Origin: Anaeramoeba ignava BMAN
Taxonomy: Eukaryota > Protista > Anaeramoebae
Direction: 5' to 3'
Assembly: GCA_028826165.1 (NCBI GenBank)
Contig: JAPDFW010000044.1
Span: forward strand, 496,001 to 560,000
Length of the DNA stretch: 64,000 nucleotides
The notes under the pieces are model-generated. The model was not told the DNA's origin, did not search any database, and was given only the letters and a program-made list of their open reading frames with translations. Positions 1 through 46,506 of this stretch are shown piece by piece (the stretch's first letter is position 1; each line of letters starts with the position of its first letter). Made by a program: the position numbers and the translations under genes.

Positions 1-298
1 CTGACCCAAAATTTAAGTTTTGTGAAACTGAAGTTTTTTCAAGAGGAAAACGAAAAAAAGATTATGGAGAATCAGATATAATTGAAAAAATATCTTTATT
101 TAAAGTAGCCCGATCATTGAGTAAAAAAGAAGTGGATCCACTTGTGATGAAATTTGGATCCAGATTTTTTTGATTTGGAAAAAAAAATAAAAGGAGAAAA
201 AAAGAAAAAAGTTTGAACGAAAACTATTCAAGAATCAAATTTCTCAAATTTCAGTTTAAAAGCAGAATGAAAATTTTTTTTTCTTTCATTTCTCTTTA

Positions 299-580
299 AT
301 GAGATCTGTTGAAGATTATAAAAAAAAAAAATTCCCATAAACACATAAAAAGCAATTAATGTAATTGGGGATAAATGGGAAACTTTTTTAAAAGCCGAGA
401 ATATTATTTTAGAACAATCAGACCTTAGAGATACTATTTGTAGATTTTTCATCCAATTAAAAAGAAAAGATGGAAAAGAATATAAACTAAAAACTTATAG
501 GAGTTATTGCTCTAACCTTTTATCATTTCTCAATCAAAAAAAATTAGATTCGTTAATTAAATTTTTGAAAAAATTTTTTT
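299..580 (+). mobile_element. Crypton-type tyrosine-recombinase transposase, decayed N-terminal fragment
   Basis: Manual translation (frame from 331): IPINT*KAINVIGDKWETFLKAENIILEQSDLRDTICRFFIQLKRKDGKEYKLKTYRSYCSNLLSFL. IPxNT and FFxxxxxKDGxEY match the Crypton/DUF3504-associated N-terminal region. In-frame stop at 346. Confidence 0.7.
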
Positions 581-706
581 TTTTCTTTTTTTTTAAATAA
601 TAAAAATCAACTTTCCCACATTACATTTCATTTTTAATTTTTTTCATTTTTATTTTCAAATTTTTTCTAAGTTGGTTTTTCTCTTCCTTTCCCTTCTTGT
701 TAAAAA

Positions 707-1036
707 ATGGAAACCCAAGAAATTTATCAAATATTACAGGATTTAAATAAATTGGCAAAGTGGGATGAAATTTGTTCATTATTTTTAATTTTTTCAGAAA
801 TTGTATCTCCAAATATCCAAATAGAGAAAATTGGTGAAATTTTAGAAACCCTTCAAGAAATAACTAAAAAAGAATACATTTCATCTCAGGTCCATTATTG
901 GGCAATTTCTTCTCTTGAAAAATTCATCCACCAAAATCTCCTGACACAAATTTCTCAATCATTTCCCGACTTGGATATCGAGAATATCCTTTATCATACA
1001 CACAAATTTTGTATATTTTTCTCTAATAAATATTAA
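707..1036 (+). other. Coding-like ORF fragment of unknown identity inside the transposon-fragment block
   Basis: 109-aa ORF of normal complexity with no motif recognised. Confidence 0.25.
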
Positions 1037-1119
1037 AAAAAGCCTTACTTTTTTATTTCTCAAAAAACTCAAAAATTGTTTCTCGGAGACAATAGGAATG
1101 AAAAAGAAAAAGAAAATCA

Positions 1120-1830
1120 AAAACAAAATGAATTAAAAAATTCAGAAAATTGTATGAAAACGACCACGAAATGAGATCAGCATTTAACATCGGAACCAAA
1201 ATTGTAGGAATCAGTATCTCGAAATTTTATAGATTCCTCAACTTATTTGATATTAAAACACAAAATAGATTACAAGATTATTGTGACGAAATCAAATTCA
1301 AATTAACTCCAATCGTTAATCACATGGCAGAATCAATTCTAGATTCATCTGCAGAGGAACTAGAACAATCTACTGATCCTTCATCAACACAAATCATGGA
1401 ACACATGAAAAATCATTTTATATCTGATAAAGATATTGATAAAATCGCTAACTGCTCAAGAAAGTTATTTATTAATAAAGAATTGACAGATTGATCTTCT
1501 CTTCTAGATCTCAAAGAAAAAATACATCAATTAGTCACAAGTAAGGAAAGAAAAAATCCAAAAATCAAAAGAAAAAAAACATTCAACAGATAAAAAAATC
1601 ACAAACAAAGAGGAGGAAGCATTTTTCGAAATTATTCTCTCAGATTTCACTATTATCAAAAAATTAATATTTTGTCGGTATGATCTCTCCACTCGTCATT
1701 GTGAATCTTTTCTCAGCATTTTAAATAATTATAGAGAGAAATCAAAAGATTTTCCAAATTATGATCTTCTCAATAAAATCCCAATGATAGATGGGAATTC
1801 CAATCACAAATCAGAAAAAAATAAATTGAT
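1120..1830 (+). mobile_element. Mutator-like transposase remnant, internally deleted
   Basis: ORF 1150-1494 (..IGTKIVGISISKFYRFLNLFDIK..MAESILDSSAEE) resembles the Mutator-like N-terminus and is paralogous to 12608-13300. 1660-1800 translates as CRYDLSTRHCESFLSILNNYREKSKDFPNY..IDGN, the C-terminal T-x-x-x-E-S-F motif. The catalytic middle is missing. Confidence 0.65.
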
Positions 1831-1979
1831 GGAATATGAAAAGAGAAGTCGATCAAAGAAAATCACTTCAACCGAAAAATCTCAGAAAAAAAAAAGAAAA
1901 AAAATTGAGTATGGAAACCACTTTTTAATATTTTTCTTTCCAAAATTTATACGTCTCATTCAAATTCATGTTTAACCTA

Positions 1980-2550
1980 TTTGTTCCGTTAATAGAAGGT
2001 TACTTGAACAGAATAACAACATCCAGGATAAGTTTCGTCAATTTTTATCAAATCCTATTACACTATTTGCTTCCTTCTGGATAGGTCTGTCATCCATTTT
2101 CTTTCTTTCCCCTAATGAAAATGGCAAATCAAGATCAAAAATTAGGATTACTACAAGAAAGAGTACAAAAAATTATTTGCTGGGAAGGAAAACTCGTTCA
2201 TAATCCTGAAAATTGGGCAAATATTTTAGGATCTTTGTTTGTTTAAAAAACCAATATTCTCAAGAAATAAATCATATAACGGACCAATTTTTTAATGGAA
2301 TACAACCTCTGAAACAAGCAAATTATTTATCTGAAGAAATAGAAGAGGATGTAAGTGTTGTGATCAGTCTCTGGGGAGAAACTGTTAAAAAAAAATTTTA
2401 GTATCATTGCAAAAAGTTCTTAATTGAACTTACAGATCAGGAAAAAACCTTAAGTGTGAAAGGTAACACACGCTTAATGGAGAGATTGTTTACTTTAATT
2501 ATCCCTATAACACCGCAATCTGAAACAAATATACAACTAATAGATTCCCT
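1980..2550 (+). mobile_element. Possible DDE (hAT-like) transposase C-terminal remnant
   Basis: Broken + strand frames ending ..GNTRLMERLFTLII.. (ERxF catalytic-Glu-like motif) at about 2460-2500. Confidence 0.3.
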
Positions 2551-2552
2551 CA

Positions 2553-2587
2553 TGAAAAAAAAAAATGAAAAAAAAAATGAAAAATTT
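2553..2587 (-). promoter_or_regulatory. Tandem TTTTCATTTT (Inr-like) motifs facing into block A
   Basis: tgaaaaaaaaaaatgaaaaaaaaaatgaaaaattt is the reverse complement of the motif cluster seen upstream of host start codons. Confidence 0.4.
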
Positions 2588-3020
2588 AATTATAATTAAG
2601 AAATGATTTTAAAACCTTTTTATTATTAATATAAAAATAAAGTTAAAAATAATGAAATAAATTTAATTAAAATATTTTATTTATTATTTATTTAATTTTT
2701 AATAATAATTAATTTATTAATATTAAATAAATATTATTAAAAATAAAAAATAAAAATTTAAAATTATTTAAAATATTTTATTTATTATTTTTTTATTTAA
2801 TTTTTTTAATATTAATAAAAATAAATATAATTAAAAATAAAGAAATAAAATTAATTAAAAATATTTTTATTTATTATTTTATTTAATTTTTAATAATAAA
2901 ATGATAAAATTAATTAAATGATTTTAAAATGTTTTTTTATTATTAATATTAAATAAATATTATTATATTAAAAATAAATATTATTTAAAATAAAAGAAAT
3001 AAATTTAAAAAGAAATAAAA
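2585..3020. repeat. AT satellite family 1 (~144-bp unit), about 3 degenerate copies
   Basis: Contains aagaaatgattttaaaa..ttattattaatattaaataaatattattaaaaataaagaaataaaattaattaaaatattttatttatt, as in 13.7-16.3 kb. Confidence 0.85.
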
Positions 3021-3023
3021 AAA

Positions 3024-3051
3024 ATTTTTTTCATTTTTCATTTTTCATTTT
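3024..3051 (+). promoter_or_regulatory. Tandem TTTTCATTTT (Inr-like) motifs facing into block B
   Basis: ttttttcatttttcatttttcatttt directly after the satellite. Confidence 0.4.
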
Positions 3052-3289
3052 AAAATATTTAGTATCCTTTTGTAAATTTATTTCAATTTTTTCTTTTTTT
3101 GATTAATTGTTTTCTTTCAAAATTTTGAGAGCTTCTCAGTTTGTTGTTTGATTTTTTTTGTGATAATTTTTTGTTTTCGATCTTATTTTGATTCTTTTCC
3201 TTTTTATATCTCTTCTCCTTAATACATTTTTCAGATTTATCATCTAAATTGAAATATCTTTGTTCAAAAAAGCGGATCAACCCTTCTCA

Positions 3290-4060
3290 AACTTCATTCC
3301 ATCTAATCTGCGAAATACAAACTCGAAGAAGATAACTTCGCCACATGTTCCTGGCTTTTGGGCAAACATTTGCGATTAAGGCATTGGCGAATTCGCACAA
3401 CGTCGTTGTCGAATAAGTAGAAATTAATTTGTGTTCGTAGGTTTCTGTAAGATCATCCAATTTCTGTGTGAGAAAAGATGCTGCATCTTTAAGATCCAGG
3501 TTATATGGGTTTTTTTTGGGTATTTCGTGATTGTATTTCGTAGGATTGAGGAAATCATGAGTTTTCTCTTCTTTGCTTTTCCAGATTTGTTCGCCTTGTT
3601 ACTGGCTTTAAAAGGACAGAAATCGGGGTAACAAGAGTGATTTCCCTTCCAATGGTCTAAACATCCCATCAATCGTTCCTTGAAATCAGTCACATTTCGA
3701 GAAGAGAAAATGGAATGACTGATCCAGTTGAATAGATGGGATGCAAAGGCCGTTTTGAAGGAAAAATTTTTTAATGCTTTGTCAAAATTCCCACCTTTTT
3801 CGATCCAAGATTTGATTGTGTTTGTGCGGAGATTTTTAATAAAGTGACGCCGATCTCTGAATTGTTGCAAAGTATGGTGAAAGTCCTCAGCCATTTTGGA
3901 AGTATCTGCTAAAGTGGTTTTGGATCTATCCCATCTGGAAAGCAATCCAAAGTATAAAATAACCCGAAACTTGTTTGTATCGCTCTTTTCTTCATCAAAG
4001 AAGAATCATGTGAGAAATCGTTGTCAACCACAAAATAAAGTTTGGGTATAGACAAACTAT
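3290..4060 (-). mobile_element. Mutator-like transposase remnant (core to C-terminus)
   Basis: ORF 3424-3945 has DRRHFIKN (DxxHxxKN) and DHWKGNHSCYPDFC (H-x-x-G-x-H-x-C). After a frameshift it continues TTTLCEFANALIANVCPKARNMWRSYLLRVCISQIRWNE. Confidence 0.7.
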
Positions 4061-4599
4061 TTTTCCTTTTTTTAAAAACCGAGCACTAATAAAAGATTTT
4101 TCCTTTTAGATGCTCAGATCTTTCTAAAATGATAGATAGGTGATTTAACGAACTTCTGTAATTTTATATCTCCATACAAAAAACATCACCTATGATTTAT
4201 TCATCAAAAAAATGTATTTTTTCCGTTCTTAATTTTATCATAATGAAAAGAGAAAAATAAAAAAAAATTGAAATTCTTTTCTTAATTTGAAGATTATGGA
4301 TAACGAAAAAAAACCATAAATTAGAAAAATGAGATTAAATTAGAAGTTTTGTTATATCAATTTTTGTCTTATATGGAGTTATGATTTCATGATTAAATTC
4401 AACAAAAAATAAAAAATAAAATTTTAAATAAAACAAAATTCAAAATAACTTATTAATTTCGAATTGATTCATATTTTTATTTCAGTATTTCATTTCAAAT
4501 TCATTTTTTTGGTATTTTCAAAACTTAATTTGGTGCCATTCAAAAAATTAAATTAATTTTTGAAGTTTTTGATTTATCTATTCAGCTAGAAAGAAAATC

Positions 4600-5025
4600 T
4601 TGTTGAGGAGGAAAACGATAAATTTTAACTTAACCAAAAATGGATATATGAATTCAATACCTTCGATTCAATCATTTCTAATGATTGATAATTGCTCTGT
4701 TATGACATAGCTAAAAGATATATTCAATTCTTCTTTCGTTTTTAGCTTTTTCTGCCCAAATATGTGTAATATTTTTTTGTAACCAAAAAAACAATGCTTT
4801 AAATTCTTCTCTTGAAATAGGATCTCTTTTTCGATTGGGTTCATTGATACTACAAACATCATCACAGAGATCATGATATCCCAATAAATGAAATGGGAGA
4901 ATAAACATTTTCCTTCTTAATAATTCTGCTTTCCCTTCACAATATGATATTGAATTTAGGATCCAAGTTTTCAAATAAGAATCAGGCAGTTTTTGAAGGT
5001 TAGGGTATTTATATAGAGATTTCAA
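4600..5025 (-). mobile_element. Mutator-like transposase remnant
   Basis: ..FILPFHLLGYHDLCDDVC.. carries the same HxxGxHxxC..C motif as 3424-3945 and is frameshifted downstream. Confidence 0.55.
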
Positions 5026-5402
5026 TTTTGAATTTTTGAATATATTATTCCAAAAAGAAGCAAAACAAAATTATCTGAAGGAATAACATATCAACCGATT
5101 TGGATCTTTTGAAAATACTCTATTAAATAGGATGGAAATAATTCATCTTATTGATCTCAGTTCTATTTTTGAGATTTAGATTCCTTGGTTTTTTCTTTCT
5201 TTTTGAGATAGCTCAAAAGATTCTGTAACGAGGTATTTTTGAAACCTAAGCAATGAGTTGGAGGATTGAATCTTTATGAAGTTTTTTCTTCCTAATCTTG
5301 GAGTTTCCTGTGAAATTTTCCTCATTAATTCTTTTAAATGCGGATCTTGTTTAATTTTTCTGGAAATTTCCATGTTTCTGATTTTGGAATTGATTCAGAT
5401 GC

Positions 5403-5790
5403 TTAAATGATTGAATTTTCCTTTGTTTGAGGATCAAAATGTTGTAGATCATGGAAACGTGATTTTAGTTTGTGAAAAAATGAATTATCTAATGGGCTTA
5501 AATCACAAGCAATATAAGCAGGGAAAAATCTAATTTCAAATCCAAGTTCTTGTAATATTGAAACAATAACTTTTGCATGATGAACTCGGAGATTGTCCAT
5601 CAATAAGATTTTTCTTTCAGAAGGATCTAAATTTGGTTCAAGAATCTTGGAGATATAGTCCAAAAATAAGTTAATATTCATTCCATTAATTGCTTTATCT
5701 TGTACTTGATGATTTTTAAACTAGATTTTTTATGCACAATATAATAAAGAGGTAAATTCTTTCCATCTCCTCTTAATGTTGAATGAAGAA
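5403..5790 (-). mobile_element. pogo/Tc1-mariner superfamily DD35D transposase remnant
   Basis: HSTLRGDGKNLPLYYI / GMNINLFLDYI..ILLMDNLRVHH..IRFFPAYIACDLSPLDNSFF, with 35 residues between the MDN aspartate and the SPLD aspartate. Confidence 0.85.
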
Positions 5791-5929
5791 TTTTTTCAAG
5801 ATTATTTTGAGATTTTATAATTAATTTTTTAGATATTTTATAATTTATTTTTTTGGATTTTTTTTTAATTAATTAAAAATAAATTTTCAATTTTTTTTTT
5901 TTGGAAAATTTTATTTTGAAAATATTTTC

Positions 5930-6110
5930 AAATCAAAATTAAAATTAAAATTAAAATTAAAATCAAATCCAAATTCAAATTAAAATTAAAATCAAATCAA
6001 AATTAAAATTAAAATAAAAATCAAAATAAAAATAAAAATCAAAATTAAAATTAAAATCAAAATTAAAATCAAAAATTAAAATTAAAATCAAAATCAAAAT
6101 AAAAATCAAT
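5930..6110. repeat. (AAAATY)n hexamer tract at the strand-switch point of block B
   Basis: Directly visible. Confidence 0.85.
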
Positions 6111-6125
6111 TTTAGAGATTATGTC

Positions 6126-6650
6126 CATCTGAAACTAGCGTTACAAGATTTATTAAAGAGGAACCATTAAGCTATAAAATTGTAAATGCTTTTTTAATGA
6201 GAGATGGAGTGCATATAATAATAGGCATGGATGAAGGGTCTTTATTCATTGAACCACTTATTGCTCTCATGTCCGAAATCCAGATGAGAAATCAAGCAGG
6301 AAAAAATAACTTTAATCAAAATAATGAAAATAACATAAAATCAATTATGAAGCAGAGAATCCTTGGGATTATAACGATAATAATAACTAATTTATTACAA
6401 GAATACGAAGATCTTCTGCAAAAAGGTAAGGAAAAAAAATTTCGCCAATTATTTCGGATAATTGTAACAAAATGAGACAAGGAGAGAATTCAGTTGCAAC
6501 AGGATTTTTCGAATTTCTGAAAATAAAGGACTATATAAGATTTATCACCATTGGATGCATGGAGCATTTTGCAAATATAGTATATGATCACTTAAATAAG
6601 TTTCGGGATATTTTTGGTATGTTGTTCGACAAGAAAGAAATGAAAAGCTA
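6126..6650 (+). mobile_element. DDE transposase remnant (probably CxxH/hAT-like)
   Basis: PSETSVTRFI..IIIGMDEGS.. followed, after a frame break, by ..FITIGCMEHFANIVYDHL (CxxH). An overlapping frame reads DLSPLDAW, so the superfamily is ambiguous. Confidence 0.45.
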
Positions 6651-7325
6651 ATTGAAAATATGAATGAAAATGTAAAAAAATTTCTGATCAGAATCCAATT
6701 TTTTTTGATGAAATTTCTTCATTGAAAAAAACTTGATCAATAAAATCTTAATTTAATTCAATTTAAATTTCTTGTTTTTTCTTCCATTCTTAATAAGATA
6801 GAAATGAAAATCAGAACAGAGTGTTTTAAAGAAGAATCACAAAGAAAAAATTAATTCATTTTTGGATCCTTCGGATTACTGAGTTGGATCCAAAAATCAA
6901 AGAAATTAATTCATTTTGAACAAGAAGCAAAAAAAAATTTATTGGAAAAAATAAGTGAGGTTTTCTTTTTAAAAAAATTCCAAAATACTTCTCTTGAATT
7001 TCTTAATGAAAATTCATTCATTTTTTTCTTCAAATGTCAAAGTTTGAGAAAGCTAAAGAAAATCAAAAAAGAAGAGTTGGAAATCCAAAAAAGAAAATTT
7101 CAGAAAGTACAGATCCTGAAAAAATGTTGATTCGGAGAATGGATAAAAATAAAGAAAAATTCAAATTAAAAAACTTCAAGAATCGGTAAGAAATCATGAT
7201 ATAACAATAGAAAAATTAAAAAAGAAAATTGAAAAAAAAAAGAAAAATGGAAATCAAAAACTTTCAATAATCCAAATCATCCCTTTATAATCTCATTTAA
7301 AAAAAAAGGGAAATATGAAGATAAG

Positions 7326-7640
7326 ATGATAAGAATTGGAGGATTTTTAGTAAGTGTAACTAAAAATGCGACGGCGGCTCACAATAGTTTAAAGTTAATA
7401 AAAAAATTATATAAAAGTATTTTGAAAAAAAATAACATTTATATTCGATTTAATGATGCTTCTCCATGTCCAAATACACTAAATACTTTTGTTCAAGAAG
7501 GTTCCGTTCTCTATCAATATACAACTGCGTATTTGGTGAGTCAATCCGAAAATTTACAACTTTGCCTCGATCAAGTATCCAAAATGGGAGCGAGAAATCT
7601 CGGTATCCTAGTTTATATACAACAAAAAGTTGACGATGAG
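7326..7640 (+). mobile_element. Possible hAT-like transposase N-terminal remnant
   Basis: PCPNTL..LQLCLDQVSKMGARNLGILV resembles the PSxxT...L-x-x-D first-aspartate region. Confidence 0.3.
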
Positions 7641-7659
7641 AAAGAAGATGAGAAAGAAA

Positions 7660-7905
7660 AACAAAATCAAAATCAAATTCAAATTCAAATTCAAATTAAA
7701 ATCCAAATTCAAATTCAAATTCAAATCCAAATCCAAATTCAAATTCAAATTCAAATTCAAATTCAAATTCAAATTCAAATTCAAATTCAAATTCAAATTC
7801 AAATTCAAATTCAAATTCAAATTCAAATTCAAATTCAAATTCAAATTTAAATTCAAATTCAAATTCAAATTCAAATTCAAATTCAAATTCAAATTCAAAT
7901 TCAAA
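7660..7905. repeat. (CAAATT)n microsatellite
   Basis: About 40 near-perfect hexamers that generate spurious QI/FK/LN ORFs. Confidence 0.95.
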
Positions 7906-8289
7906 ATTAAAATCTGGTAATGAATCAAATGAAACTATCGATCAAGATCCAAAAGAAAAAAGAAAAAAGAAAAAAAAAAAGGATCTGTAGCCTTTGTAAT
8001 GGGATCCAAGAAAAAAATCACAGAGAAAAGTATCTTCCCATACAAGAAATGAAAGCAAATTCCACATATCACATTTATAAAAATTGTGTAAGGAATATTC
8101 AATCATTAGAAAAAAGAAAATATGCATACGCTATGTGCATGGAAAATACAGATAAAAAGAAACTCGAAGAAATGATTCAAGAAGAATTCTTTAAATGGAA
8201 TGCGACTAAAACAAGGTTATCAAATCAAAAGAGATTAATGAAAGTAAAAAAAAAATGAAAAAAATTTTTTTATTTTTTTTCTTCACAAA

Positions 8290-8438
8290 AATAAACATAA
8301 AAAATAAAAAAGTAATTTATTTAAAAATATTATTTTAAACATAAATTATTTATCTAAATTATTTAAATAATAAAAATATTTATAAATTATTTATTAAAAT
8401 TATTAAATTTCAATTTATTTTATTTATTGAAAAAAAAT

Positions 8439-8471
<33 letters not shown>

Positions 8472-9280
8472 AAGTAATTTATTTAAAAATATTATTTTAA
8501 ACATAAATTATTTATCTATATTATTTAAATAATAAAAATATTTATAAATTATTTATTAAAATTATTAAATTTCAATTTATTTTATTTATTGAAAAAAATA
8601 TAAAAAATAAAAATAAAAATAAAAACAAAAAGTAATTTATTTAAAAATATTATTTTAAACATATATTATTTATCTAAATTATTTAAATAATAAAAATATT
8701 TATAAATTATTTATTAAAATTAATTAATTTAAATTTATTCTATTTATTGAAAAAAATATAAAAATAAATAAACATAAAAATAAAAATAAAAATTAATTTA
8801 TAAAAATATTATTTTAAACATATATTATTTATCTAAATTATTTAAATAATAAAAATATTTATAAATTATTTATTAAAATTAATTAATTTAAATTTATTTT
8901 ATTTATTGAAAAATATAAACAATAAAAATAAAAATAAAAATAAAAGTAATTTATTTAAAAATATCATTTTAAACATAAATTATTTATCTATATTATTTAA
9001 ATAATTAAAATATTTATAAATTATTTATTAAAATTAATTAATTTCAATTTATTTTATTTATTGAAAAAAAATAAAAAATAAAAATAAAAAGTAAAAAGTA
9101 ATTTATTTAAAAATATTATTTTAAACATAAATTATTTATCTATATTATTTAAATAATAAAAATATTTATAAATTATTTATTAAAATTAATTAATTTAAAT
9201 TTATTCTATTTATTGAAAAAAATATAAAAATATAAATTATTTAAAATATTTATTAAAATTAATTTCAATTTATTTTATTT
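8290..9280. repeat. AT satellite family 2 (~155-160-bp unit, about 6 copies)
   Basis: gtaatttatttaaaaatattattttaaacataaattatttatct recurs near 8311, 8474, 8632, 8790, 8947 and 9098. Confidence 0.9.
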
Positions 9281-9672
9281 AATAAAAAAACAACAGAAAC
9301 AAATTTCATCAATATTTAATCAAGAAAACACTTCAGATATCCAAATTTATTGAGGAATTGATAAAAGAATACTTTATTGCCATAAATATATATTTGACTG
9401 CTCGTTCATTAACTTTTTTAACCAAAATTTCTGAAAAACAACAGAAAAAATTAATATTTGATAATTTTCATTCAAATATTGTTACACCGATAATGGAATA
9501 TACTTATAGTTGAGAATTATCTTTTAATAAAGAAGAATTTGATAAATATTGGGAATTTGCTAATCAAAACCCAAAAAAGAAGTATGAAAAAAATTAAATC
9601 TTATTCCATTAATTACCTTTTTTTTTGATTGGAAAGACAATTTCTTAAGGTTGAAATCATCAAGTGTTTTTT

Positions 9673-10097
9673 TCATTCTCTCTTCTGAGTATTATAGGTA
9701 TATTTGATTTTTCTGTTTCTGTTTTCTTCCCAATCAAGAGCTGGCATTTGATAGATAACGTTATAGTATTTATAATGTTTAGTCTTGTTTCTATAGATAT
9801 TTACAACATTAAACCAGAATTCATTGTGGTTTGTGGAGTAATTGAATCGACAAAAGAGAAGTTTAATCAGAATTTTCTTCGAAAACATAAATTTTACAAG
9901 GATTTGAATGCCCAAATATGTAATTTTCTAGTCACTTTTTTCCAAATCTGAGCAGGGAACTAATTCTACGTTTTCATTCCCTTCAGTCACACAAAATTGA
10001 TGAATATCTTGTATGTGCAGTAAGTATGCCCCCCAATTTTGTATCAATTCCAAAATTTTTTCATATATTATTGTATGACCCGATAAAAATGGGATTC
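9673..10097 (-). mobile_element. Mutator-like transposase C-terminal remnant
   Basis: ..LLHIQDIHQFC..*..LFCRFNYSTNHNEFWFNVVNIYRNKTKHYKYYNVIYQMPALDWEENRNR, the same C-terminal motif as 1660-1800 and 3290-3420. Confidence 0.65.
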
Positions 10098-10339
10098 AAT
10101 TCCCAATATTTTTTATTTTTGTAAAATTGCAATGAAATAAGCATTTTATTATCGAGGAAAAAAGTGAAAGTTGAGTCAAATCCAATTGTGTATTGGAATT
10201 TTGATAAGGAAGTGGTTGATATTCTGTAAAATTCGAAAGAGGAGGTGAAACATATTTAGCTGGTTCTTGTAATGAGTTTTTTAATGAATTTTGTAATGAT
10301 CTTTGTAATGATCTTTGTAATGATTCTTCTACTTCAAAT

Positions 10340-10640
10340 CCAAATTTATATCCACAATGAAAAAAGCAATTTCTAACATGTTCATGTGGGATCTGTTTAT
10401 ATGCCTTGAATATTGCAACTTTTTTTCTTTGTTGGGGTATCATGTTCAATTGAAAAAAAACTTGTTTTCAAGTTCTGAAAAGAAATTATTATCACAAGGA
10501 CTCAATTTACATGCTCTTCCCACTGAAAAAAAACGGCATTCAAACCCAATTTTTAATGGTTTGAAAAGAGACACCAAAATGATCTCCAATTTTAGAATAA
10601 TTTCCAAAAAAAATCTTGATCAGGATCCAAATACATTTCA
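10340..10640 (-). mobile_element. pogo-type transposase remnant: HTH joined to the C-terminal end (internal deletion)
   Basis: YSKIGDHFGVSFQTIKNWV (HTH) directly abuts GFECRFFSVGRACKLSPCDNNFFSELENKF and ..AYKQIPHEHVRNCFFHCGY. Paralogous to 5403-5681. Confidence 0.7.
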
Positions 10641-10992
10641 ACTGTTTGCTTTTTGATCTTAAATGAAGAATACCATCTTTAATGCCGATAAAAAATAACA
10701 CCAATAACAAAGATTTTTTTTCTTTTTTTCTTTTATTTTTCATTAAATATTATTTTTATGTTAATTATTGAATTTATCTTGATTTTTACGATCACCAATT
10801 TTTTTATAATTTTGAAAAATATAGAATTGTTTTTTTGGATTTTTTTTCTTTTCTTTTTTACTTCAAACTAATCTTTTTGGGAGATCTTCAAAAAAAGAAA
10901 AAAAGGAAATCAATTGAATTTTGTTAAAAGTGTAAATTAAACTAAAATTTTCCAATAAAGATATCTCCGATAAATCATTTGAAATGGAGAAA

Positions 10993-11440
10993 TTAAATTA
11001 TTCTTGTATTCCTGAAAAACGAATCCATAGAAGTTTTTAGATTTATTTCGAAATCGATAGTGATAAATTCTGTTTCAATTCGGGGAGTAATAAACTGAAG
11101 CAGTGAGAAGAACTCTAGATAATTGTTCAGTTCTTTTGTTTGCATAACCCCATAAAGGACTGGCAGAAACATATTTGTATCATTGTTTCTAGCCCTTATC
11201 ACAATGAATTGTTTAAAACCAGTTGGAGCTACTCGGAAAGTCTCGTCAAGGAATAATTGTCGAGCTCCAGATAAATGATTAAGCATCTTAGTACTCGTCA
11301 ATATTACAACATTATACGGATAGATGCATTGAGTCTGAAAGAATTCTTTGTTATCGAAAGTTTGCATTCCGTATGAATTCGCCCTAGGTAAATAATTTCT
11401 TTCCCTACTTCGTATCCTCGTACCATATCGTGTGATCTCT
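10993..11440 (-). mobile_element. MULE transposase domain remnant
   Basis: LFLDETFRVAPTGFKQFIVI..FLPVLYGVMQTKELNNY..ITIDFEINL..FF matches the MULE DGTF..PxxY..K..Y..DFE signature. Truncated just before CxxH. Confidence 0.85.
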
Positions 11441-12479
11441 CTGTAGAAGGGACCTTTAAAAACAGTTTATTTGCTATGTGAAATTTTTTTTTGTAATTTC
11501 CTTCACATTGAATTATCTCTTTTAGATTCGATTACATGATTCCAACAATTAAAGAATTAATGGAATTTGAACTAATTGAAAAATGTGGATCGAAAAAGAA
11601 ATTTCTCTTTGTTCAGAAATTACTCAAATATCTGGACGAGGATTTGGATAAAATTTTTGGCACTCCCAATTGGGAGATCATCCCAAAAAGTTTTGATTTG
11701 GGGGTTAATCTTATTGAATTTTTGAAAAAATAAAAAACTCAAAATAAATCCCAAATTATTTTTCTTTTTGATTTTATTGATTAATTTGTTAAAATAAAAC
11801 AAAATAAAACAAAACAAAACAAAAGATAGAATTTTAAATAAATTGTAATTTTAAATTATTGATTTAAATATTTGTCAATTTTTTAATTAATTCATGTTTT
11901 TTAGCAAGCGAAATGCTTTTTATTTGTCTTCTTTGCATCTCTTGGTAAATCTTATTCCTACTCAAATCAAAAATTGAATCAGTATTCACTATCTTCTCCC
12001 AATCTATTTTATCGATTTTCTGGGAATCATTAAAGAGTTTTTTCCTCATTTTTTTGCGTGCTTTGTAATATAGTATCGAATTTTTCATTTCCGCAATCTT
12101 TTCTTTTTTTTTGTCGAAGAGATATTAATGTCTAATTGTTTGTTTGCATTCTTCTGTAGGAAATAACTAGAATAAATGGAAAAAAAAACAACTATTATCA
12201 GGTTTTTTTTACTTCATTTTCGATTGGAAAGGAAGAGAATTGGATTCAATTTTTGGGCTGATTAATTTCTCCTTTAACTTTGGAATCAGTTTCAAAGATT
12301 AATCATTGTGAATATTCAAAATGTTAGGATTAGAGTCTGAATTTGATTCTTTCTCAATTTGTTGGTATTATCAGATTGGGCTCAATTAGTGTGAGAACCT
12401 CAATTTTTAGTAACAAACTTCTCTCGAAATCACAAGTAATTATTTGAAGGGTTTGGGAGCAATTAAAAAGGTCCCATCA

Positions 12480-13140
12480 AAAAAAGATTGAGAATTTTGC
12501 AATAACAGACCAGACAATTTATCAGTTGTCCAAATAATAAATGATTCCTTTTTGTTTCCTATCATTATGGAATTGGATGATCTCCAAAAAATTAAATTTG
12601 GGATCTTTTGGTATCAAAAAAAATACTGAGAAAAACCAAGATTCATTATATAAATCCAGAAAATCACCACAAGAAACTCGTCAATCTATACAAAATTTTC
12701 AAAGAGTCATACGAAACAGATAGAAATTTTCGTTCAATTTTCAATATAGGAGCCAAAATAAATGAGCTCGCCATTTCCAAACTTTATCGTGTTCTCAATA
12801 TGTTGAATATCAAAACACAAGAAGGACGACAAGAATATTATCAGGATGTCAAATACAAGTTAACTCATAACGTTGAAGAAATATATCAAACAAAAATTAA
12901 AGAAATTGATAATAAAATCGGAGAAGAAACAGACCCTGAACAACTGGACATGATCAAGCATATGAAAGAAAATTTTATTTCGAATGAACAAATTCCAAAA
13001 ATTGCGAAACTTGCGAAACTTGCGAAATCACTTTTCTTAGGAAATAAATTGGAAGAAAAAGAAGAAATCTTGAATTTTCAAACTGAACTAACTGAAAAAG
13101 TCATTCATTGTATTGAAAATAAAGAAGGAACATGTAAGAA
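12480..13140 (+). mobile_element. Mutator-like transposase N-terminal remnant
   Basis: RSIFNIGAKINELAISKLYRVLNMLNIKTQ..TDPEQLDMIKHMKENFIS aligns by eye with ORF 1150-1494. Ends in an (AAGAAT)n tract. Confidence 0.6.
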
Positions 13141-13689
13141 TAAGAATAAGAATAAGAATAAGAATAAGAATAAGAATAAGAAGGCGAAAAAATATCATCA
13201 CAAGGATTCTCAAAATCAGGAAAGTAATCAAAATAATCAAAATAATGAAAATCAAGTAAAATATAAAGTGGAAATAGAATTTGGAGAAGAAATTTCATAA
13301 TATCACTCGAGTCGATATTTTATGTAGAAATGGCAAGAAAATTCATATCCAAAACACTGATGAATTAAAGCTTTTTCAGTTTCTCTGTGAAGATAAGAAA
13401 TCAAATTTAGAAAGTTCAGATGATAAGCTACTTCTTTTCATAGAGGGAATAGAAAAAAAAAGGAATCAACAAACCACAGAAAGGAATAGCCAAGGAGTGA
13501 TCGAAACATACAAGGAACTTGATCCAATATAAAACTCAAAACAGGTCAAATGCTTAATTTGCGATATCACATTTTCTCCAAGTTAACAACAAAAATCCTC
13601 AAATTGAATTTTGGGAGAAAAATCAGCAGCTCTATTAATTTAGTGATAAGTGCATTGGGCAAAAATTTCGCTCAAAAAATCCGAATTAT

Positions 13690-16315
13690 TTAATTTTTAA
13701 TTACAATTATTTGAAATAAATTAATAAAATTAATAAAGAAATGATTTTAAAACCTTTTTTATTATTAATATTAAATAAATATAATTAAAAATAAAGAAAT
13801 AAATTTAATTAAAATATTTTATTTATCATTTTACTTAATTTTTAATAATAATTAATTTACCATTTTGTAATAAAATTAATTAAGAAATAATTTTAAAAAG
13901 GAATTATTATTAATATTAAATAAATATTATTAAAAATAAAGAAATAAAATTAATTAAAATATTTTATTTATTTTTTTTTTAATTTTTAATTTAATTATTT
14001 TTAAATTAATAAAATTAATTAAAGAAATGATTTTAAAAAGGAATTAATAATATTAAATAAATATTATTAAAAATAAAGAAATAAAATTAATTAAAATATT
14101 TTATTTATTATTTTTATTTAATTTTTAATTATAATTAATAAAAATAAATTAATAAAATTAATTAAGGAATGATTTTATTTCATTTTTTTATTAATAATAA
14201 ATAAATATTATTAAAAATAAAGAAATAAATTTAATTAAAATAATTTTCATTTTTACTTAAAATAATTATTATTAATAAAAATAAGTTAATAAAATTAATT
14301 AAAAATGATTTTAAAAAGGAATTATTATTAATATTAAATAAATATTATCAAAAATAAAGAAATAAAATTAATTAAAATATTCTATTTATTATTTTATTTA
14401 ATTTTTAATTATAATTAATAAAAATAAATTAATAAAATTAATTAAGGAATGATTTTATTTCATTTTTATTATTAATATTAAATAAATACTATTAAAAATA
14501 AAGAAATAAATTTAATTAAAATATTTTATTTATTATTTTATTTAATTTTTAATTATAATTATTTAAAAATAAATTAATAAAATTAATTAAAAATGATTTT
14601 AAAAAGGAATTATTATTAATATTAAATAAATATTATTAAAAATAAAGAAATAAATTTAATTAAAATATTTTATTTATTATTTTATTTAATTTTTAATAAT
14701 AATTAATTTACCATTTTGTAATAAAATTAATTAAAAATGATTTTAAAACTTTTTATTATTAATATTAAATAAATATTATTTAAAAATAAAGAAATAAATT
14801 TAATTAAAATATTTTATTTATTATTTTATTTAATTTTTAATAATAATTAATAAAAAAAATAAGTTAATAAAATTAATTAAGAAATGATTTTAAAATGTTT
14901 TTATTATTAATATTAAATAAATATTATTAAAAATAAAGAAATAAAATTAATTAAAATATTTTATTAATTATTTTATTTAATTTTTAATAATAATTAATAA
15001 AAATAAATTAATAAAATTAATAAAAGAAATGATTTTAAAAAGGAATTATTATTAATATTAAATAAATATTATTAAAAATAAAGAAATAAATTTAATTAAA
15101 ATATTTTATTTATTATTTTATTTAATTTTTAATTATAATTATTTATTATTTTACAATTAAATTAAGAAATGATTTTAAATTATTATTAATAAATAAATAT
15201 TATTAAAAATAAAAGAAATAAATTTAATTAAAATATTTTATTTATTATTTTACTTAATTTTTAATTATTATTAATTTACCATTTTGTAATAAAATTAATT
15301 AAAAATGATTCTAAAAAGAATTTTATTATTAATATTAAATAAATATTATTAAAAATAAAGAAATAAATTTAATTAAAATATTTTATTTATTATCATTTTA
15401 TTTAATTTTTAATTATAATTAATAAAAATAAATTAATAAAATTAATTAAGAAATGATTTTAAAAATTGTTTTATTATTAATATTAAATAAATATTATTAA
15501 AAATAAAAGAAATAAATTTAATTAAAATATTTTATTTATTATTTTATTTAATTTTAATAATAATTATTAAAAATAAATTAATAAAATTAATAAAGAAATG
15601 ATTTTAAAAATGTTTTTATTATTAATATTAAATAAATAATTATTAAAAATAAAGAAATAAAATTAATTAAAATATTTTATTTATTATTTTATTTAATTTT
15701 TAATTATAATTAATAAAAATAAATTAATAAAATTAATTAAGAAATGATTTCAAAAACTTTTTATTATTAATATTAAATAAATATTATTAAAAATAAAAAT
15801 AAAATTAATTAAAATATTTTATTTATTATTTTATTTAATTTTTAATAATTATTATTAAAAATAAATTAATAAAATTAATTAAGAAATGATTCTAAAAAAG
15901 GAATTAATATTATTAATTAAATAAATATTATTGTAAGAAATAAAATTAATTAAAATATTTTATTTATTATTTTGTTTAATTTTAATAATAATTAATAAAA
16001 ATAAATTAATTAAATTAATTAAGAAATGATTTTAAAAAGGAATTAATATTAATATTAAATAAATAAATAAAAATTAATTAAAATATTTTTATTTATCATT
16101 TTATTTAATTTTTAATAATAATTAATAAAAATAAATTAATAAAATTAATTAAGAAATGATTTTAAAAAGGAATTATTATTAATATTAAATAAATATTATT
16201 TAAAAATTAAAGAAATAAATTTAATTAAAATATTTTATTTATCATTTTGATTTAATTTTTAATTATAATTAATAAAAATAAATTAATAAAATTAATTAAA
16301 AAATGATTTTAAAAA
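13690..16315. repeat. AT satellite family 1 (~143-145-bp unit, about 18 copies)
   Basis: The (g)aaatgattttaaaa anchor recurs about every 144 bp. Confidence 0.95.
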
Positions 16316-16415
16316 TTTTTTTTTTTCATTTTTTTTCAATCTTTTAGACAAGAAAATTTATCTATTTTGTGAAAGAAAAGAATGAGAAGAATCTCCAATC
16401 CAATTTCTCCAATAA

Positions 16416-16760
16416 TTGAAGATTTTTTTTCTAAAAGGATCGAGTGGAGTAGAAGTAGAAAGTTCACAAAAAACAACTCGGTGCACTTTTGTATCAACTT
16501 TAAGAGGAGATGGAGAAATTCTACCAATTTACTATATTGAGCACAGACCTCAAACAATTTTAAATGGTCAAATTTGGAAAAAAGCTATAAAAGGAATAAA
16601 TGTAGAACTATTTGTGGATTATATTTGTAAAACCCTTTCAAATGTAGACAAAAAAAAACCAAAACTATTTCTTATGGATAATCTTAAAGTTCATCATTCT
16701 AAAGGTGTGCTAGATAAATTGGCAAATCTTGACTTCTAAACAAGATTTTTTCCAGCTGGT
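16416..16760 (+). mobile_element. pogo-type transposase remnant
   Basis: RCTFVSTLRGDGEILPIYYI..KGINVELFVDYI..LFLMDNLKVHH..*TRFFPAG. Paralogous to 5403-5790. Confidence 0.85.
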
Positions 16761-16979
16761 GGAACTAAATCATTAATTTGAAAAGAAAATTTTTCAAAAA
16801 AGAAGTAATTTTCAGTTTATTTGAAGAATAAAATTTTGATTGAAGAAATAACCTATACTTCTAAGACTCAATCAAAAAAAAAAGGAACTTTTCAAAAAGT
16901 TATCAAATTTTATTCCAAAATTTTTTCATTTTTTTCTGGAATTAATCCAAATAAATTCATAAATTTTTCAAATTATTTT

Positions 16980-17765
16980 TGGGGTTTCTCCAAATTAATT
17001 ACGGGGTACTGTATCTTAACCAAAAGAAATTGATTAATGTAGATCTAAAAAATTCTAATTTCGAAGATATCAAGAATACAATGGAAAATCGACTAAAACA
17101 GATTATTTCAGGAGAAGAAGGTTTCGTTGAGCATTATCAAGAATTCAAGGAAAGCGAGAAATAGCGATTAAGGAATTAACTCCAATTAGAAAAACCAAAA
17201 ATTTAACATTTGCGGTTGAGAGAGATCCATTTTGATCACAAAAAAGGATAAGATTATATTGAATTTGTACAAGGAGAATGCAAGAATAACCAATCTAGGT
17301 ATATCAATTCAAATTACGAACCGAAAATGGCAAAATTCTTTAAACTTCCAGATGAAGAAAAGGATTCCTATCATATTATTTTGAAATAGATCCCTTTTCA
17401 AAAAGTAATGATCAAGTTGATCAAAAAGATGATAACATATTTTTTTTCGAGCGATCAATCATAACAACAAGTAGAAGCCTCTCAAAAATCACGTAATTAC
17501 ATCAACTACTTTAAGAGCATATTTTCAGGAAAAATCTACTCAATGTGGTGTTACTGAAAAGATTGGGTTACATTTTATTAGAGTTACGAGTATGAATCGT
17601 TTAGTAAATAAAGGAATTTCTGATGAGGATATAATGAAAATCAAAAGTGGATACAAATCTTCATCTGCTCTTCAAACTTACAAAAGAATTTCACTAAAAA
17701 AAGAGAAGGTAATTGATCAAACTTTAAATTTAAATGAACAATCACTTCCAAAATATCATTCTTAA
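16980..17765 (+). mobile_element. Crypton-type tyrosine-recombinase transposase, decayed catalytic domain
   Basis: HLRLREIHF..*DYIEFVQGECKNNQ.. then KIGLHFIRVTSMNRLVNKGISDEDIMKIKSGYKSSSALQTYKR, giving HxxR, G(H>Y)xS and the catalytic Tyr-K-R of tyrosine recombinases. Missed by the ORF track. Confidence 0.85.
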
Positions 17766-17890
17766 AATTCAATGAATCATTGGAAAAAAAATTGGAATTT
17801 CCAGATGTTATGTTTAATTTCAATTTTAAAAAACTCTTTTTTTAGTTAATGAAAACTTTCATTTATAAAATTTGAAAATTTAGCAATTTA

Positions 17891-18364
17891 ATACGAGCGA
17901 TTGATGGAACCGAACATCCTAGAGATCGACTAGTGGTAAAAGAATCTACCTATCACACTGGAAAGAAGAAATTTTCCACATTAATGTCACTAGCTATTTG
18001 CGATTTTAAAGGAAAACTAATCGCTTTTGAAACTGGAATTGATGGCCAAAATAATGATTCGGGCGCTTACAAAATAAGGGAAATGAAAAAAAAAGTTAAG
18101 GCATCTGGGTACAAATTGTTAGTTGATGGAGAATTTGGAGAAAAAGAGATGATCAAACCATTCCAAAAAAAAAATCAAGAAAGATTAAGCCAAATTGAAT
18201 GGGAAACAAAACAAAAGCAATGCATAACAAGATCAGTAATTGAAAATGTTTTTGCATATATGAAAAAATACAAGGTAGCCAAATACCAAGTAAAAATTAG
18301 TGTAAAACTTCAAACAAGAGCACTCAAATCGATTGCAGTTTGTTATCAAATCCAAAAAACTTAA
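17891..18364 (+). mobile_element. PIF/Harbinger-like (DDE_Tnp_4) transposase remnant
   Basis: AIDGTEHP..YHTGKKKFSTL..ICDFKG..GQNNDSG..LLVDGEF..RSVIENVFAYMK. All three catalytic positions are visible. Confidence 0.85.
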
Positions 18365-18534
18365 TTTGCCTAAATTGGATGAAGAAAAGATTCAACAAGA
18401 AATTCAGAGAATTATACAAAGAAAAAAAAGAAGAAAATCAAAATGAAGAAAAAAAGGAAAAGGAAAAAGAAAAAGAAAAAAAGAAAAAAAGGAAAAAAGA
18501 AAAAGAAAAAAGAAAAAAGAAAAAATCGAAGATC

Positions 18535-18720
18535 AAACCGATGTTGATATAGCAAAATTGATGCAAAGATGGGTATATGTTTTGAATGACAGATATAATC
18601 GTTCGATCAAAAGTGGGCAAAAACAGGTATGATTTTGTACAGATATTATGTAACATCTTGTGATGGGGAAAATTGTAGATTATGAAATCATTAGCACAAA
18701 CTTAAATAAACAATGGATAA
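18535..18720 (+). mobile_element. Mutator-like transposase short remnant
   Basis: GKIVDYEIIST resembles the TGKVLDYEVLSK motif after the first catalytic aspartate. Confidence 0.4.
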
Positions 18721-18825
18721 AAAAAATTGTATAATTAACACAAAATTTTTTTCTTATTCATAAAATAAAATAATATCAATTTCAAATACAAAAAGAACGT
18801 ATTTATGATGTTCATTTTTTTAAAA

Positions 18826-18857
18826 AATGAAAAAAAAAAAATGAAAAAATTTTTTTT
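18826..18857 (-). promoter_or_regulatory. Tandem TTTTCATTTT (Inr-like) motifs facing into block D
   Basis: atgaaaaaaaaaaaatgaaaaaattttt, mirrored by tttttcattttttttca at 16320-16338. Confidence 0.4.
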
Positions 18858-21105
18858 ATAATTAATTTACCATTTTGTAATAAAATTAATTAAAAAATGA
18901 TTTTAAAAAGGAATTATTATTAATATTAAATAAATATAATTAAAAATAAAGAAATAAATTTAATTAAAATATTTTATTTATTATTTTATTTAATTTTTAA
19001 TTATAATTAATAAAAATAAATTAATAAAATTAATTAAGAAATGATTTTAAAACCATTTTATTATTAATATTAAATAAATATAATTAAAAATAAAGAAATA
19101 AAATTAATTAAAATATTTTATTTATCATTTTATTTAATTTTTAATAATAATTATTTGAAATAAATTAATAAAATTAATTAAGAAATGATTTTAAAACTTT
19201 TTTATTATTAATATTAAATAAATATTATTAAAAATAAAGAAATAAAATTAATTAAAATATTTTATTTATTATTTTATTTAATTTTTAATAATAATTAATA
19301 AAAATAAATTAATAAAATTAATTAAGAAATGATTTTAAAACCTTTTTATTATTAATATTAAATAAATATAATTAAAAATAAAGAAATAAAATTAATTAAA
19401 ATATTTTATTTATCATTTTATTTAATTTTTAATAATAATTAATAAAAATAAATTAATAAAATTAATTAAGAAATGATTTTAAAACCTTTTTTATTATTAA
19501 TATTAAATAAATATTATTAAAAATAAAGAAATAAATTTAATTAAAATATTTTATTTATCATTTTTATTTAATTTTTTATAATTAATTTACCATTTTGTAA
19601 TAAATTTAATTAAGAAATGATTTTAAAAACTTTTTATTATTAATATTAAATAAATATTATTAAAAATAAAGAAATAAATTTAATTAAAATATTTTATTTA
19701 TTATTTTATTTAATTTTTAATAATAATTAATTTAATAAAATTAATTAAGAAATGATTTTAAAACCATTTTATTATTAAAAATGATTTCTAAAAAGAAATA
19801 AAAAAAATAAAATATTTTAAAATAAATTTTTATTATTAATTAAATAAAATATTATTAAAATAAAAATTAATTAAAAATTTTAAAATTAATTAAAATTTAA
19901 AATTTTATTATTTTAATAAAATTAAATTATAAAATTTTTTATTTTTTTATTTATTATTTTTAAAGAAATTTAATTAAAATATTTTATTTACCATTTTTGT
20001 AATAAAATTAAAATAAAGAAATAAAATTTTAAAAATGATTTTAAAACTTTTTTATTATTAATATTAAATAAATATTATTAAAAATAAAAGAAATAAAATT
20101 AATTAAAATATTTTATTTATTATTTTATTTAATTTTTAATTATAATTAATAAAAATAAATTAATAAAATTAATTAAAAATGATTTTAAAACTTTTTATTA
20201 TTAATATTAAATAAATATTATTAAAAATAAAAGAAATAAAATTAATTAAAATATTTTATTTATTATTTTATTTAATTTTTAATTATAATTAATAAAAATA
20301 AATTAATTAAAATTAATTAAGAAATGATTTCAAAAACTTTTTATTATTAATATTAAATAAATATTATTAAAAATAAAGAAATAAAATTTAATTAAAATAT
20401 TTTATTTATTATTTTATTTAATTTTTAATTATAATTAATAAAAATAAGTTAATAAAATTAATTAAGAAATGATTTTAAAACTTTTTATTATTAATATTAA
20501 ATAAATATAATTAAAAATAAAGAAATAAAATTAATTAAAATATTTTATTTATTATTTTTATTTAATTTTTAATTATAATTAATAAAAATAAATTAATAAA
20601 ATTAATTAAGAAATGATTTTAAAAAGGAATTATAATTAATATTAAATAAATATTATTAAAAATTAAAGAAATAAAATTAATTAAAATATTTTATTTATTA
20701 TTTTATTTAATTTTTAATAATAATTAATAAAAATAAATTAATAAAATTAATTAAAGAAATGATTTTAAAATGTTTTTTATTATTAATATTAAATAAATAT
20801 TATTAAAAATAAAGAAATAAAATTAATTAAAATATTTTATTTATTATTTTGTTTAATTTTTAATTATAATTATTTATTATTTTACAATTAAATTAATTAA
20901 AAAATGATTTTAAAACCATTTTTTATTATTAATATTAAATAAATATAATTAAAAATAAAGAAATAAAATTAATTAAAATATTTTATTTATTATTTTATTT
21001 AATTTTTAATTATAATTAATTTATTATTTTGTAATAAAATTAATTAAGAAATGATTTTAAAACTTTTTTATTATTAATATTAAATAAATATTATTAAAAA
21101 TAAAT
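18855..21105. repeat. AT satellite family 1 (~144-bp unit, about 15 copies)
   Basis: Anchor near 18895, 19037, 19180, 19324, 19469 and 19612, with a degenerate patch at 19770-20030. Confidence 0.95.
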
Positions 21106-22805: not shown

Positions 22806-22887
22806 TTATTATTTATTATTTTTCGAATTAAAATGAAAAAAATGAAAATGAAAAAAATGAGAAAAAATTTTTTGGATTTTTAAATTT

Positions 22888-46320: not shown

Positions 46321-46506
46321 TAAAAGAAAAAATGAAAAAAAAGATCAAATTATTTTCGAAAAAAAAAAAAATTTTTTTTTAATTAATTTTTAATTTAAAT
46401 TGATCAGTTTTTTTTCTTTTTAAAATAAAAAAACAAAAAAAAACAAAATAACCATTTTTTTTAATTTAAAATTTAGTTTATTCAAAAAGCAAAAAAAAAA
46501 ATTAAA

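Follow-up and report, generated by a model that had tools for sequence, protein, structure and literature searches.

Broken DNA transposons among AT-rich tandem arrays: a probable decay island in the genome of Anaeramoeba ignava

The Drosophila flamenco locus is a uni-strand PIWI-interacting RNA (piRNA) cluster of about 180 kb with one promoter, in which most insertions lie antisense on one strand. Transposon graveyards, such as the intergenic nests of transposable elements (TEs) of plants and the TE clusters of Dictyostelium, form another kind of locus in which many transposon fragments are found together. For Trichomonas vaginalis, Warring et al. (2021, PMC7845603) described PIWI-like Argonautes, small RNAs of ~34 nt that cover transposons, and putative piRNA clusters; the small RNAs were sequenced, and their matches lie on both strands of a region of 10 Mb. 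Because of this precedent in a related lineage, the idea of a small-RNA locus in Anaeramoeba would not be a new category. Here we analyse a stretch of 64,000 nucleotides from Anaeramoeba ignava BMAN, called the window below (positions 496,001 to 560,000 of the 722,773-bp contig C35, JAPDFW010000044.1, in an assembly of 42.8 Mb and 147 contigs). Its first 18.9 kb had been read in a first-pass annotation as a flamenco-like archive of transposase fragments that would be transcribed antisense. Our analyses suggest that this interval is probably part of a passive transposon-decay island, or graveyard, of ~35 kb.

The layout of such an island would result from a few ordinary processes. At least four DNA-transposon superfamilies (Tc1/IS630-pogo, Mutator/MULE, PIF-Harbinger and Crypton) would have landed in a gene-free stretch, some of them within others, and a probable hAT element together with long interspersed nuclear element (LINE) pieces of the flank would be part of the same debris. 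The landed copies would then have been shortened by internal deletion, truncation and small segmental duplications, and AT-rich tandem arrays, which fill most spacers of this genome, would have expanded or been copied into the spaces left among them. The T(n)CAT(n) clusters at the array edges, which are the same element as that found before ordinary genes, would be here either relics or duplicated array-edge modules. We infer this order of events, and likewise that no dedicated function is needed to account for the layout. One trace of the sequence of insertions appears to be preserved in the pieces X and Y of a Tc1/IS630 gene set, an older element split by younger sequence.

Broken transposase pieces and their junctions

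Seventeen fragment calls were made within 1-18.9 kb of the window (Tc1/pogo, MULE, two Mutator-like families, Harbinger, Crypton and a hAT lead; Table 1) by means of Pfam and then of tblastn and blastp searches with intact relatives from the same genome as queries. The crowding of several unrelated transposase families noticed at first sight is borne out, with five pieces recognised by Pfam and more by tblastn, and the list of families holds. As had also been stated, there is no intact element: the longest open frame is 234 aa. Intact cognates of every family are present elsewhere in the genome, in the form of Harbinger (700-1084 aa), Tc1 (400-700 aa), Crypton (437-507 aa), pogo (500-946 aa), family A (1520 aa) and MULE frames. 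Among these relatives, the intact 437-aa Crypton open reading frame (ORF) of locus L041 gives a Phage_integrase match (E=1.6e-10), and L019, a relative of the piece at 3275-4005, gives a Pfam Mutator match (E=1.6e-7). The intact 1520-aa ORF of family A, a large Mutator-like transposase, lies at L006:4944-9503(-) (C68 ~366.9-371.5 kb) and has a near-identical copy at C69:258 kb; its core has no Pfam match, the nearest named Atlas clusters being PF20700 Mutator (score 0.94), hundreds of its residues fall in N/E/K/H low-complexity repeats, and its C-terminus shows a weak match to Ulp1 (C48) protease (19.7 bits against a cut-off of 20.7). Pfam searches on ~15 additional coding-like pieces of the island returned nothing, and an exact-product look-up of two island ORFs gave no match in a search from which the records of this genome were possibly missing.

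The junctions of these pieces fit insertion followed by deletion and truncation, with no ordered assembly. The family A piece at 1141-1825 covers two segments, residues 210-353 and 565-655, of an 876-aa ORF that is continuous at C13, ~212 codons having been lost internally, and the MULE copy at 11647-12639 shows four internal deletions when compared with its relative on C143. The latter (L032:1522-4260 = C143:60522-63260) is a 2.74-kb element that carries a 313-aa MULE-domain ORF, lies between two AT-rich arrays and ends in G+C-containing terminal inverted repeats (TIRs) of 40 nt that are 85% complementary (L032 1522-1561 and 4221-4260). One of these TIRs is retained at 11647-11686, within other coding-like debris; a 29-nt TIR pattern matched there (11647-11675) with 2 mismatches, none being expected by chance. 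The earlier remark that TIRs were not seen has thus to be narrowed by this one MULE end. Generic inverted-repeat searches of the C26 locus and of window 1-13.7 and 16.3-18.9 kb yielded low-complexity pairs only and no ends for Tc1/IS630, family A, Harbinger or pogo. The second end of the MULE copy is gone at the start of the family A piece (12619-12639), and no target-site duplication (TSD) is readable because this partner end is lost. The remaining junctions are truncations, and no flanking DNA is common to four Tc1 loci.

A DNA search of window positions 1-19000 against the whole genome gave 6423 first-look candidates, 36 of which were scored; the matches fell in the arrays and in a few unique stretches, and identity to other copies spans from 92% at the nucleotide level down to no DNA similarity. 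Two further origins of the pieces were considered. The deletions are not spliced-out introns of processed copies, because they cut into continuous ORFs of the intact copies, and capture of co-oriented fragments in the manner of Helitrons or Pack-MULEs is not supported, because no composite block has a second copy among the genomic matches listed.

Table 1. Transposon pieces, tandem arrays and motif clusters in the first 21.1 kb of the window
Position	Strand	Feature	Evidence or remark
322-597	+	Crypton (tyrosine recombinase) N-terminal fragment	tblastn 322-555, E=3.7e-33; 77% aa to residues 50-127 of L041
630-1132	+	Piece X	80.5% DNA identity to small gene after Tc1/IS630 transposase on C26
1141-1825	+	Family A (large Mutator-like transposase) fragment, 5'-truncated, internally deleted	tblastn 85% and 64% aa to C13 copy
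1976-2200	+	Pogo-like piece, weak, lead only	blastp E=0.002 to residues 444-499 of 804-aa pogo ORF
2552-2584	-	Promoter-like T(n)CAT(n) cluster, 3 tandem copies	Left array edge, points left
2585-3020		144-bp AT-rich satellite family	Short array, part of it of this family
3028-3051	+	Promoter-like (TTTTTCA)n tandem cluster	Right array edge, points right, no ORF behind
3275-4005	-	Mutator-like (PF20700-type) fragment	tblastn, residues ~288-520 of 576, 25-28% aa identity
4714-5070	-	Coding-like piece, weak resemblance to family A, not established	blastp E=0.13
5406-5872	-	Tc1/pogo-type DDE fragment, C-terminal half of catalytic domain	DDE_3 E=1.6e-11 (5406-5720), DDE_1 E=2.9e-5
5930-6109		(AAATTA)n microsatellite	Between minus and plus block
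6116-6648	+	hAT-like piece, lead only	blastn and tblastn to L033; Atlas DUF659 / ZBED RNase-like / Ac transposase 0.80-0.84
7657-8256	+	Piece Y	blastn 76%, tblastn 71% aa to second gene of C26-type Tc1/IS630 element
8287-9236		AT-rich satellite, 158-162-bp unit	6 copies
9709-10047	-	Old family A fragment	Residues 539-652, 34% aa identity
10099-10553	-	Tc1/pogo-type C-terminal piece, family by inference	tblastx self-match to 5454-5549, 53% aa
10978-11466	-	MULE fragment	Pfam MULE E=7e-3 (10996-11466); tblastn E=6e-10 to C143 MULE ORF
11647-12639	-	MULE deletion copy	88-95% nt identity to 2.74-kb MULE on C143
12619-13315	+	Young family A fragment, 5'-truncated	92% nt, 91% aa to residues 178-342 of 1520-aa ORF (C68, C69); tblastn 12631-13315
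13686-16315		144-bp AT-rich satellite, GC ~4%	18.5 copies
16315-16335	+	Single motif copy	Right array edge, sense to next fragments
16416-16757	+	Tc1/pogo-type DDE fragment	Pfam DDE_3 E=3e-5 (16416-16736); self-match to 5517-5633
16955-17732	+	Crypton fragment, frame broken	Residues 118-375 of 437, 50-70% aa; Phage_integrase 17475-17762 E=2e-4
17876-18361	+	Harbinger DDE_Tnp_4 domain fragment	Residues 143-298 of 705; Pfam E=7.6e-15
18685-18849	-	Promoter-like cluster	2 copies (18822-18849) and ~130 nt leader
18878-21104		144-bp satellite, closes island	15.5 copies

Orientation, array-edge motifs and small-RNA machinery

The statistics given below are based on ~94 kb of C35 and ~45 short loci, many of which were picked for their transposons. 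Strand orientation was assessed by an exact runs test in which collinear pieces belonging to one family were joined into a single call. The window series (++++---++----++++) comprises 17 calls in 5 runs (P=0.025), and with the upstream flank (---++++++---++----++++) 22 calls fall in 6 runs over ~35 kb (P=0.008); when confident calls only are kept, 14 calls give 5 runs (P=0.086), and neighbours in the test are partly non-independent, as with X and its partner Y or with pieces that were segmentally duplicated inside the island. The non-random orientation that had been put forward therefore survives as a modest clustering and not as a uni-strand arrangement, the strand flipping every 2-4 kb. We also considered co-orientation with host genes as a source of the runs, which was not established (7 runs against 8.6 expected among 21 adjoining host genes, by hand count). 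That the 3' ends of the fragments point toward a satellite applies to 8 of 10 edges (one-sided P ~0.055), and two Mutator fragments related to the 3275-4005 piece, one on C9 and the other on C100, turn their 5' end toward their array.

The T(n)CAT(n) motif, written as TTTTCATTTT, has 97 matches in the window against 21 expected, about half of them coding microsatellites, and ~6 copies are expected by chance in 19 kb, so that the single copies at 641, 8252, 16323 and 16923 carry little weight. Reiterated copies in the sense direction stand 12-175 nt upstream of the start codons of host genes, at 22830-22854(-), 30959(+), 36010(+), 45446(-), 46516-46544(+), 56740-56766(+) and 61584-61607(+), and also before the intact Tc1 transposase ORFs of L021 and L022. 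The suggestion that the motif is a gene-start element is in agreement with these positions, and it seems reasonable to regard T(n)CAT(n) as a core-promoter or initiator-like element. At the satellite edges near 2553, 3024 and 18826, tandem clusters that resemble those upstream of host genes are confirmed. At the fourth edge, near 8255, the copy has less weight, as an alignment pairs position 8252 with an A-rich run inside the coding sequence of a 508-aa ORF on C26. With regard to the claim that the motif lies antisense to the transposases, 5 copies are antisense and 2 are sense to the adjoining fragment across the island. Among 55 array edges in all the DNA examined, the motif points outward in 19 cases and inward in 1; its direction is thus set by the array and not by the adjoining transposon, and the typical order of a spacer is array, motif cluster, gene. 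The cluster at 18822-18849 and ~130 nt beyond it are duplicated, together with satellite, 21 kb upstream at C35:493.1 kb. A second motif, AAAATGAAAA, was considered as a 3'-end signal of genes and rejected because it is missing from the 3' flanks of the host genes of the window.

The search for silencing proteins that had been proposed was carried out, and Piwi-domain genes were found at three loci (C55:343.6-345.1 kb, C141:53.8-55.1 kb and C109:79.0-80.3 kb; L029-L031). In a comparison of top hits, the C55 and C141 genes match PIWI-clade structures (Piwi, Siwi, MILI) at ~195-235 bits versus ~130 bits for the AGO clade (AGO2), and A. ignava thus seems to have PIWI-clade rather than AGO-clade Argonautes. 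A Dicer-like gene is likewise present (C64:839404-840654, +), with two RNase III domains in one 1182-aa frame. No match to RNA-dependent RNA polymerase (RdRP, PF05183) was found in the genome, a negative that says little because the control genomes gave no signal either, and no paper on RNA interference in Anaeramoeba was found in the literature. As for targets, exact 21-mers with at least 4 G/C that are common with the other copies compared occur only at 1222-1603, 11659-12591 and 12637-13277 and in a coding microsatellite. About 11 of 13 kb of unique sequence have no DNA-level match to any other copy among the matches listed, and the remaining pieces share 25-50% protein identity with their nearest intact relatives, again with no DNA-level match, so that guides derived from these would have no counterpart among the matches listed. 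Because exact 21-mers are confined to three pieces, guidance of silencing by most pieces is doubtful, and the evidence leans toward most fragments being too diverged to act on related elements.

One may then ask whether the island could be a source of small RNAs, with promoters at the array edges driving antisense non-coding transcripts from which Dicer and/or PIWI-clade Argonautes would make guides. We consider this unlikely, if slightly less so than the other alternatives. Certain points weigh against decay. Three tandem promoter-like clusters lack a sense ORF in the direction in which they point, and the fragments that they face lie in the opposite orientation; fragment orientation is clustered beyond random in the full call set (P=0.008-0.025); and the 18822-18849 cluster is nearly unchanged between its paralogous copies, the flanks of which are ~70-77% identical, which could reflect constraint or merely the stability of T and A runs in this genome. 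A true transposon end, moreover, is seen at a single junction, and classical nested insertion is shown for a small part of the island. The three clusters and the clustered orientation speak in favour of a small-RNA source, which would also be in keeping with at least three Piwi-domain genes, two of which match PIWI-clade proteins best, with the Dicer-like frame and its two RNase III domains, with the exact 21-mers that the three youngest pieces share with other copies, and with the ~34-nt small RNAs and putative piRNA clusters of T. vaginalis (PMC7845603). Against it stand the alternation of strands in blocks, the outward direction of the motif as a general rule at array edges, an antisense-to-sense count of only 5 to 2, the mutated coding run behind the copy at 8252, the ~11 of 13 kb without a DNA-level match elsewhere and the missing RdRP match, though here the control genomes are silent as well. 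A more specific version, a block-wise and multi-promoter counterpart of animal piRNA clusters in which T(n)CAT(n) promoters at array edges would give antisense small RNAs loaded into PIWI-clade Argonautes, appears to us very unlikely. Taken together, alternating strands, the general outward motif, the 5:2 antisense count, divergence and decay junctions form the testable evidence on a flamenco-like archive, and it leans against one.

A Tc1/IS630 gene set and the setting of the island

The pieces X and Y match, with order and strand kept, the pair of genes located after a Tc1/IS630 transposase on C26. They are 1.1 kb apart at C26 versus 6.5 kb in the island, which fits later insertions between them, and their similar divergence (80.5% and 76% at the nucleotide level) suggests that both derive from one copy. 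X carries an intact 109-aa ORF (707-1036, +) that is 70% identical in amino acids to the 110-aa ORF beside the C26 transposase, with a ratio of nonsynonymous to synonymous substitution rates (dN/dS) of 0.26 relative to the C26 copy; it has its own sense motif at 641, 56 nt upstream, and a weak similarity to the Death-effector domain (E=1.2e-3), and may be a living accessory gene. Y corresponds to residues 216-299 (of 520) of the second gene of a C26-type element plus a coding microsatellite and ends at an array, where the C26 ORF continues for ~220 codons. Y belongs to Tc1/IS630-type elements, because a gene of its type also follows a different Tc1 transposase at C40, with a 40% identical segment. 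It is worth adding that at both loci (L035, C26:51.2-55.6 kb; L023, C40:51.9-54.1 kb) a Tc1/IS630 transposase gene is followed by a second, larger gene on the same strand (508 aa at C26), which suggests that a multi-gene type of Tc1/IS630 element exists.

The same pieces could be taken to mean that the island, from X to Y and perhaps beyond, lies inside a composite Tc1/IS630 element that has become bloated, or inside several of them, and is no chromosomal dump. X and Y are indeed collinear, co-oriented and similarly diverged from the C26 gene set, and the Y-type gene follows a Tc1 transposase at C40 too. What stands upstream of X, however, is a Crypton piece and no Tc1 transposase; no element ends were found at C26 or in the island, the DNA search of 1-19000 showed no second genomic copy of the composite arrangement among the matches listed, and the inner DDE_3 piece (5406-5872) is diverged and lies on the opposite strand. 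On balance we find a composite element quite unlikely and retain insertion and decay as the likelier origin of the spacing between X and Y.

The island extends over ~35 kb of C35 (~481.5-517.1 kb, that is, window about -14.5 to 21.1 kb), reaching ~14.5 kb upstream of the window start and having host genes on both sides. Long host ORFs are found again from C35:481.4 kb leftward and from window 21.1 kb rightward, the first host gene to the right being on the minus strand with its start at ~21.1 kb, and the standard genetic code yields long host ORFs beyond window 21 kb. The 20 kb upstream of the window (L008, L033) contain a frameshifted MULE(-), LINE reverse-transcriptase pieces(-), a Tc1 helix-turn-helix piece(-), Harbinger pieces(+), hAT-like paralogues(+) and two further arrays of the 144-bp family; the hAT-like piece at 6116-6648 has its paralogous pieces 10 kb upstream within the island. 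Retroelement debris is also recognised in this flank at L033:433-756(-) and L008:9669-9998(-) (C35:485.7-486.8 kb), where an RVT_1 match (E=7e-5) and downstream LINE-like pieces are found. When the intact transposase ORFs of this genome were used as tblastn queries, no transposon matches were obtained in window 19-64 kb or in the following 10 kb, and no tRNA or Rfam family was found in the window. The G+C content of the window is roughly 20%, in line with the A+T content of 80.65% reported for the A. ignava BMAN genome (PMC11550330).

The tandem arrays lie where they had been placed from the letters of the sequence. Four arrays of the 144-bp family, of 2.3-2.7 kb each, are found inside the island, and the family is not specific to this locus because it is dispersed over ~30 contigs among the matches listed, most of which are to the array at 13686-16315; with 6423 first-look candidates for the 19-kb query, the family has thousands of candidate places in the genome. 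Further to the right, arrays occupy the spacers between host genes at 38916-40315, 40767-41874, 45594-46322, 49113-51364, 55365-56685 and 58117-61565, with units of 6, 18/35, 163, 33, 24/117 and 23/46 bp, nearly every spacer having its own unit length. Such array-filled spacers are an unusual genome-wide spacer architecture, and because similar arrays fill the spacers between ordinary genes, adjacency to satellite is normal here. The arrays were also considered as mobile units bounded by the motif in place of TIRs, which was rejected because in most of them the motif is present at a single edge or at none. Matches to transposases are often located in the first or last 5-60 kb of contigs (C51:3-38 kb, C134:5-59 kb, C20:9-27 kb, C68:467 of 470 kb), and transposons may be concentrated near chromosome ends or at assembly breaks.

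A heterochromatic or centromere-associated domain that tolerates insertions and recombines little would account for the sole cluster of broken transposon pieces found on C35 in the family searches, for ~35 kb without genes and for the four 144-bp family arrays inside, but we hold it the least likely of the readings considered here, as that family is spread over ~30 contigs among the matches listed and similar arrays lie between ordinary genes.

Comparison with known systems

If the island is an ordinary graveyard, its value lies mainly in annotation, as a record of the DNA-transposon families of A. ignava: dead transposon copies accumulate in islands that lack genes, and the AT-rich arrays, like the reiterated gene-start motif, are of general occurrence and call for caution in their interpretation. 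With putative PIWI-clade Argonautes and a Dicer-like gene in its genome, this lineage lends itself to tests of small-RNA control of transposons, and such work could sensibly begin at an island whose three promoter-like clusters are orphans. Were it a source of antisense small RNAs, it would represent a counterpart of piRNA clusters in a free-living relative of parabasalids.

With flamenco the island shares a cluster of fragments from many families, promoter-like elements antisense to some of them and a host with putative PIWI-clade Argonautes. Unlike flamenco, it changes strand every 2-4 kb and has several small promoter-like clusters directed both ways, and most of its pieces have no DNA-level match to an extant copy. 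The putative piRNA clusters of T. vaginalis (PMC7845603) belong to a related lineage with PIWI-like Argonautes, where repeat-rich sources of small RNAs directed against transposons have been proposed; they rest on sequenced small RNAs of ~34 nt, whereas the island rests on the anatomy of its DNA. Transposon graveyards differ from it in that their nests are cleanly bounded by TIRs and TSDs, while the junctions of the island are mostly joins of one truncation to another at A/T-rich low-complexity tracts, and in that its pieces are interleaved with tandem arrays of ~4% GC, a general feature of spacers in this genome. In other respects the resemblance to graveyards is close: a gene-free stretch holds truncated and internally deleted copies of many unrelated families and of mixed ages, with at least one true element end inside the debris and an older gene set pushed apart.

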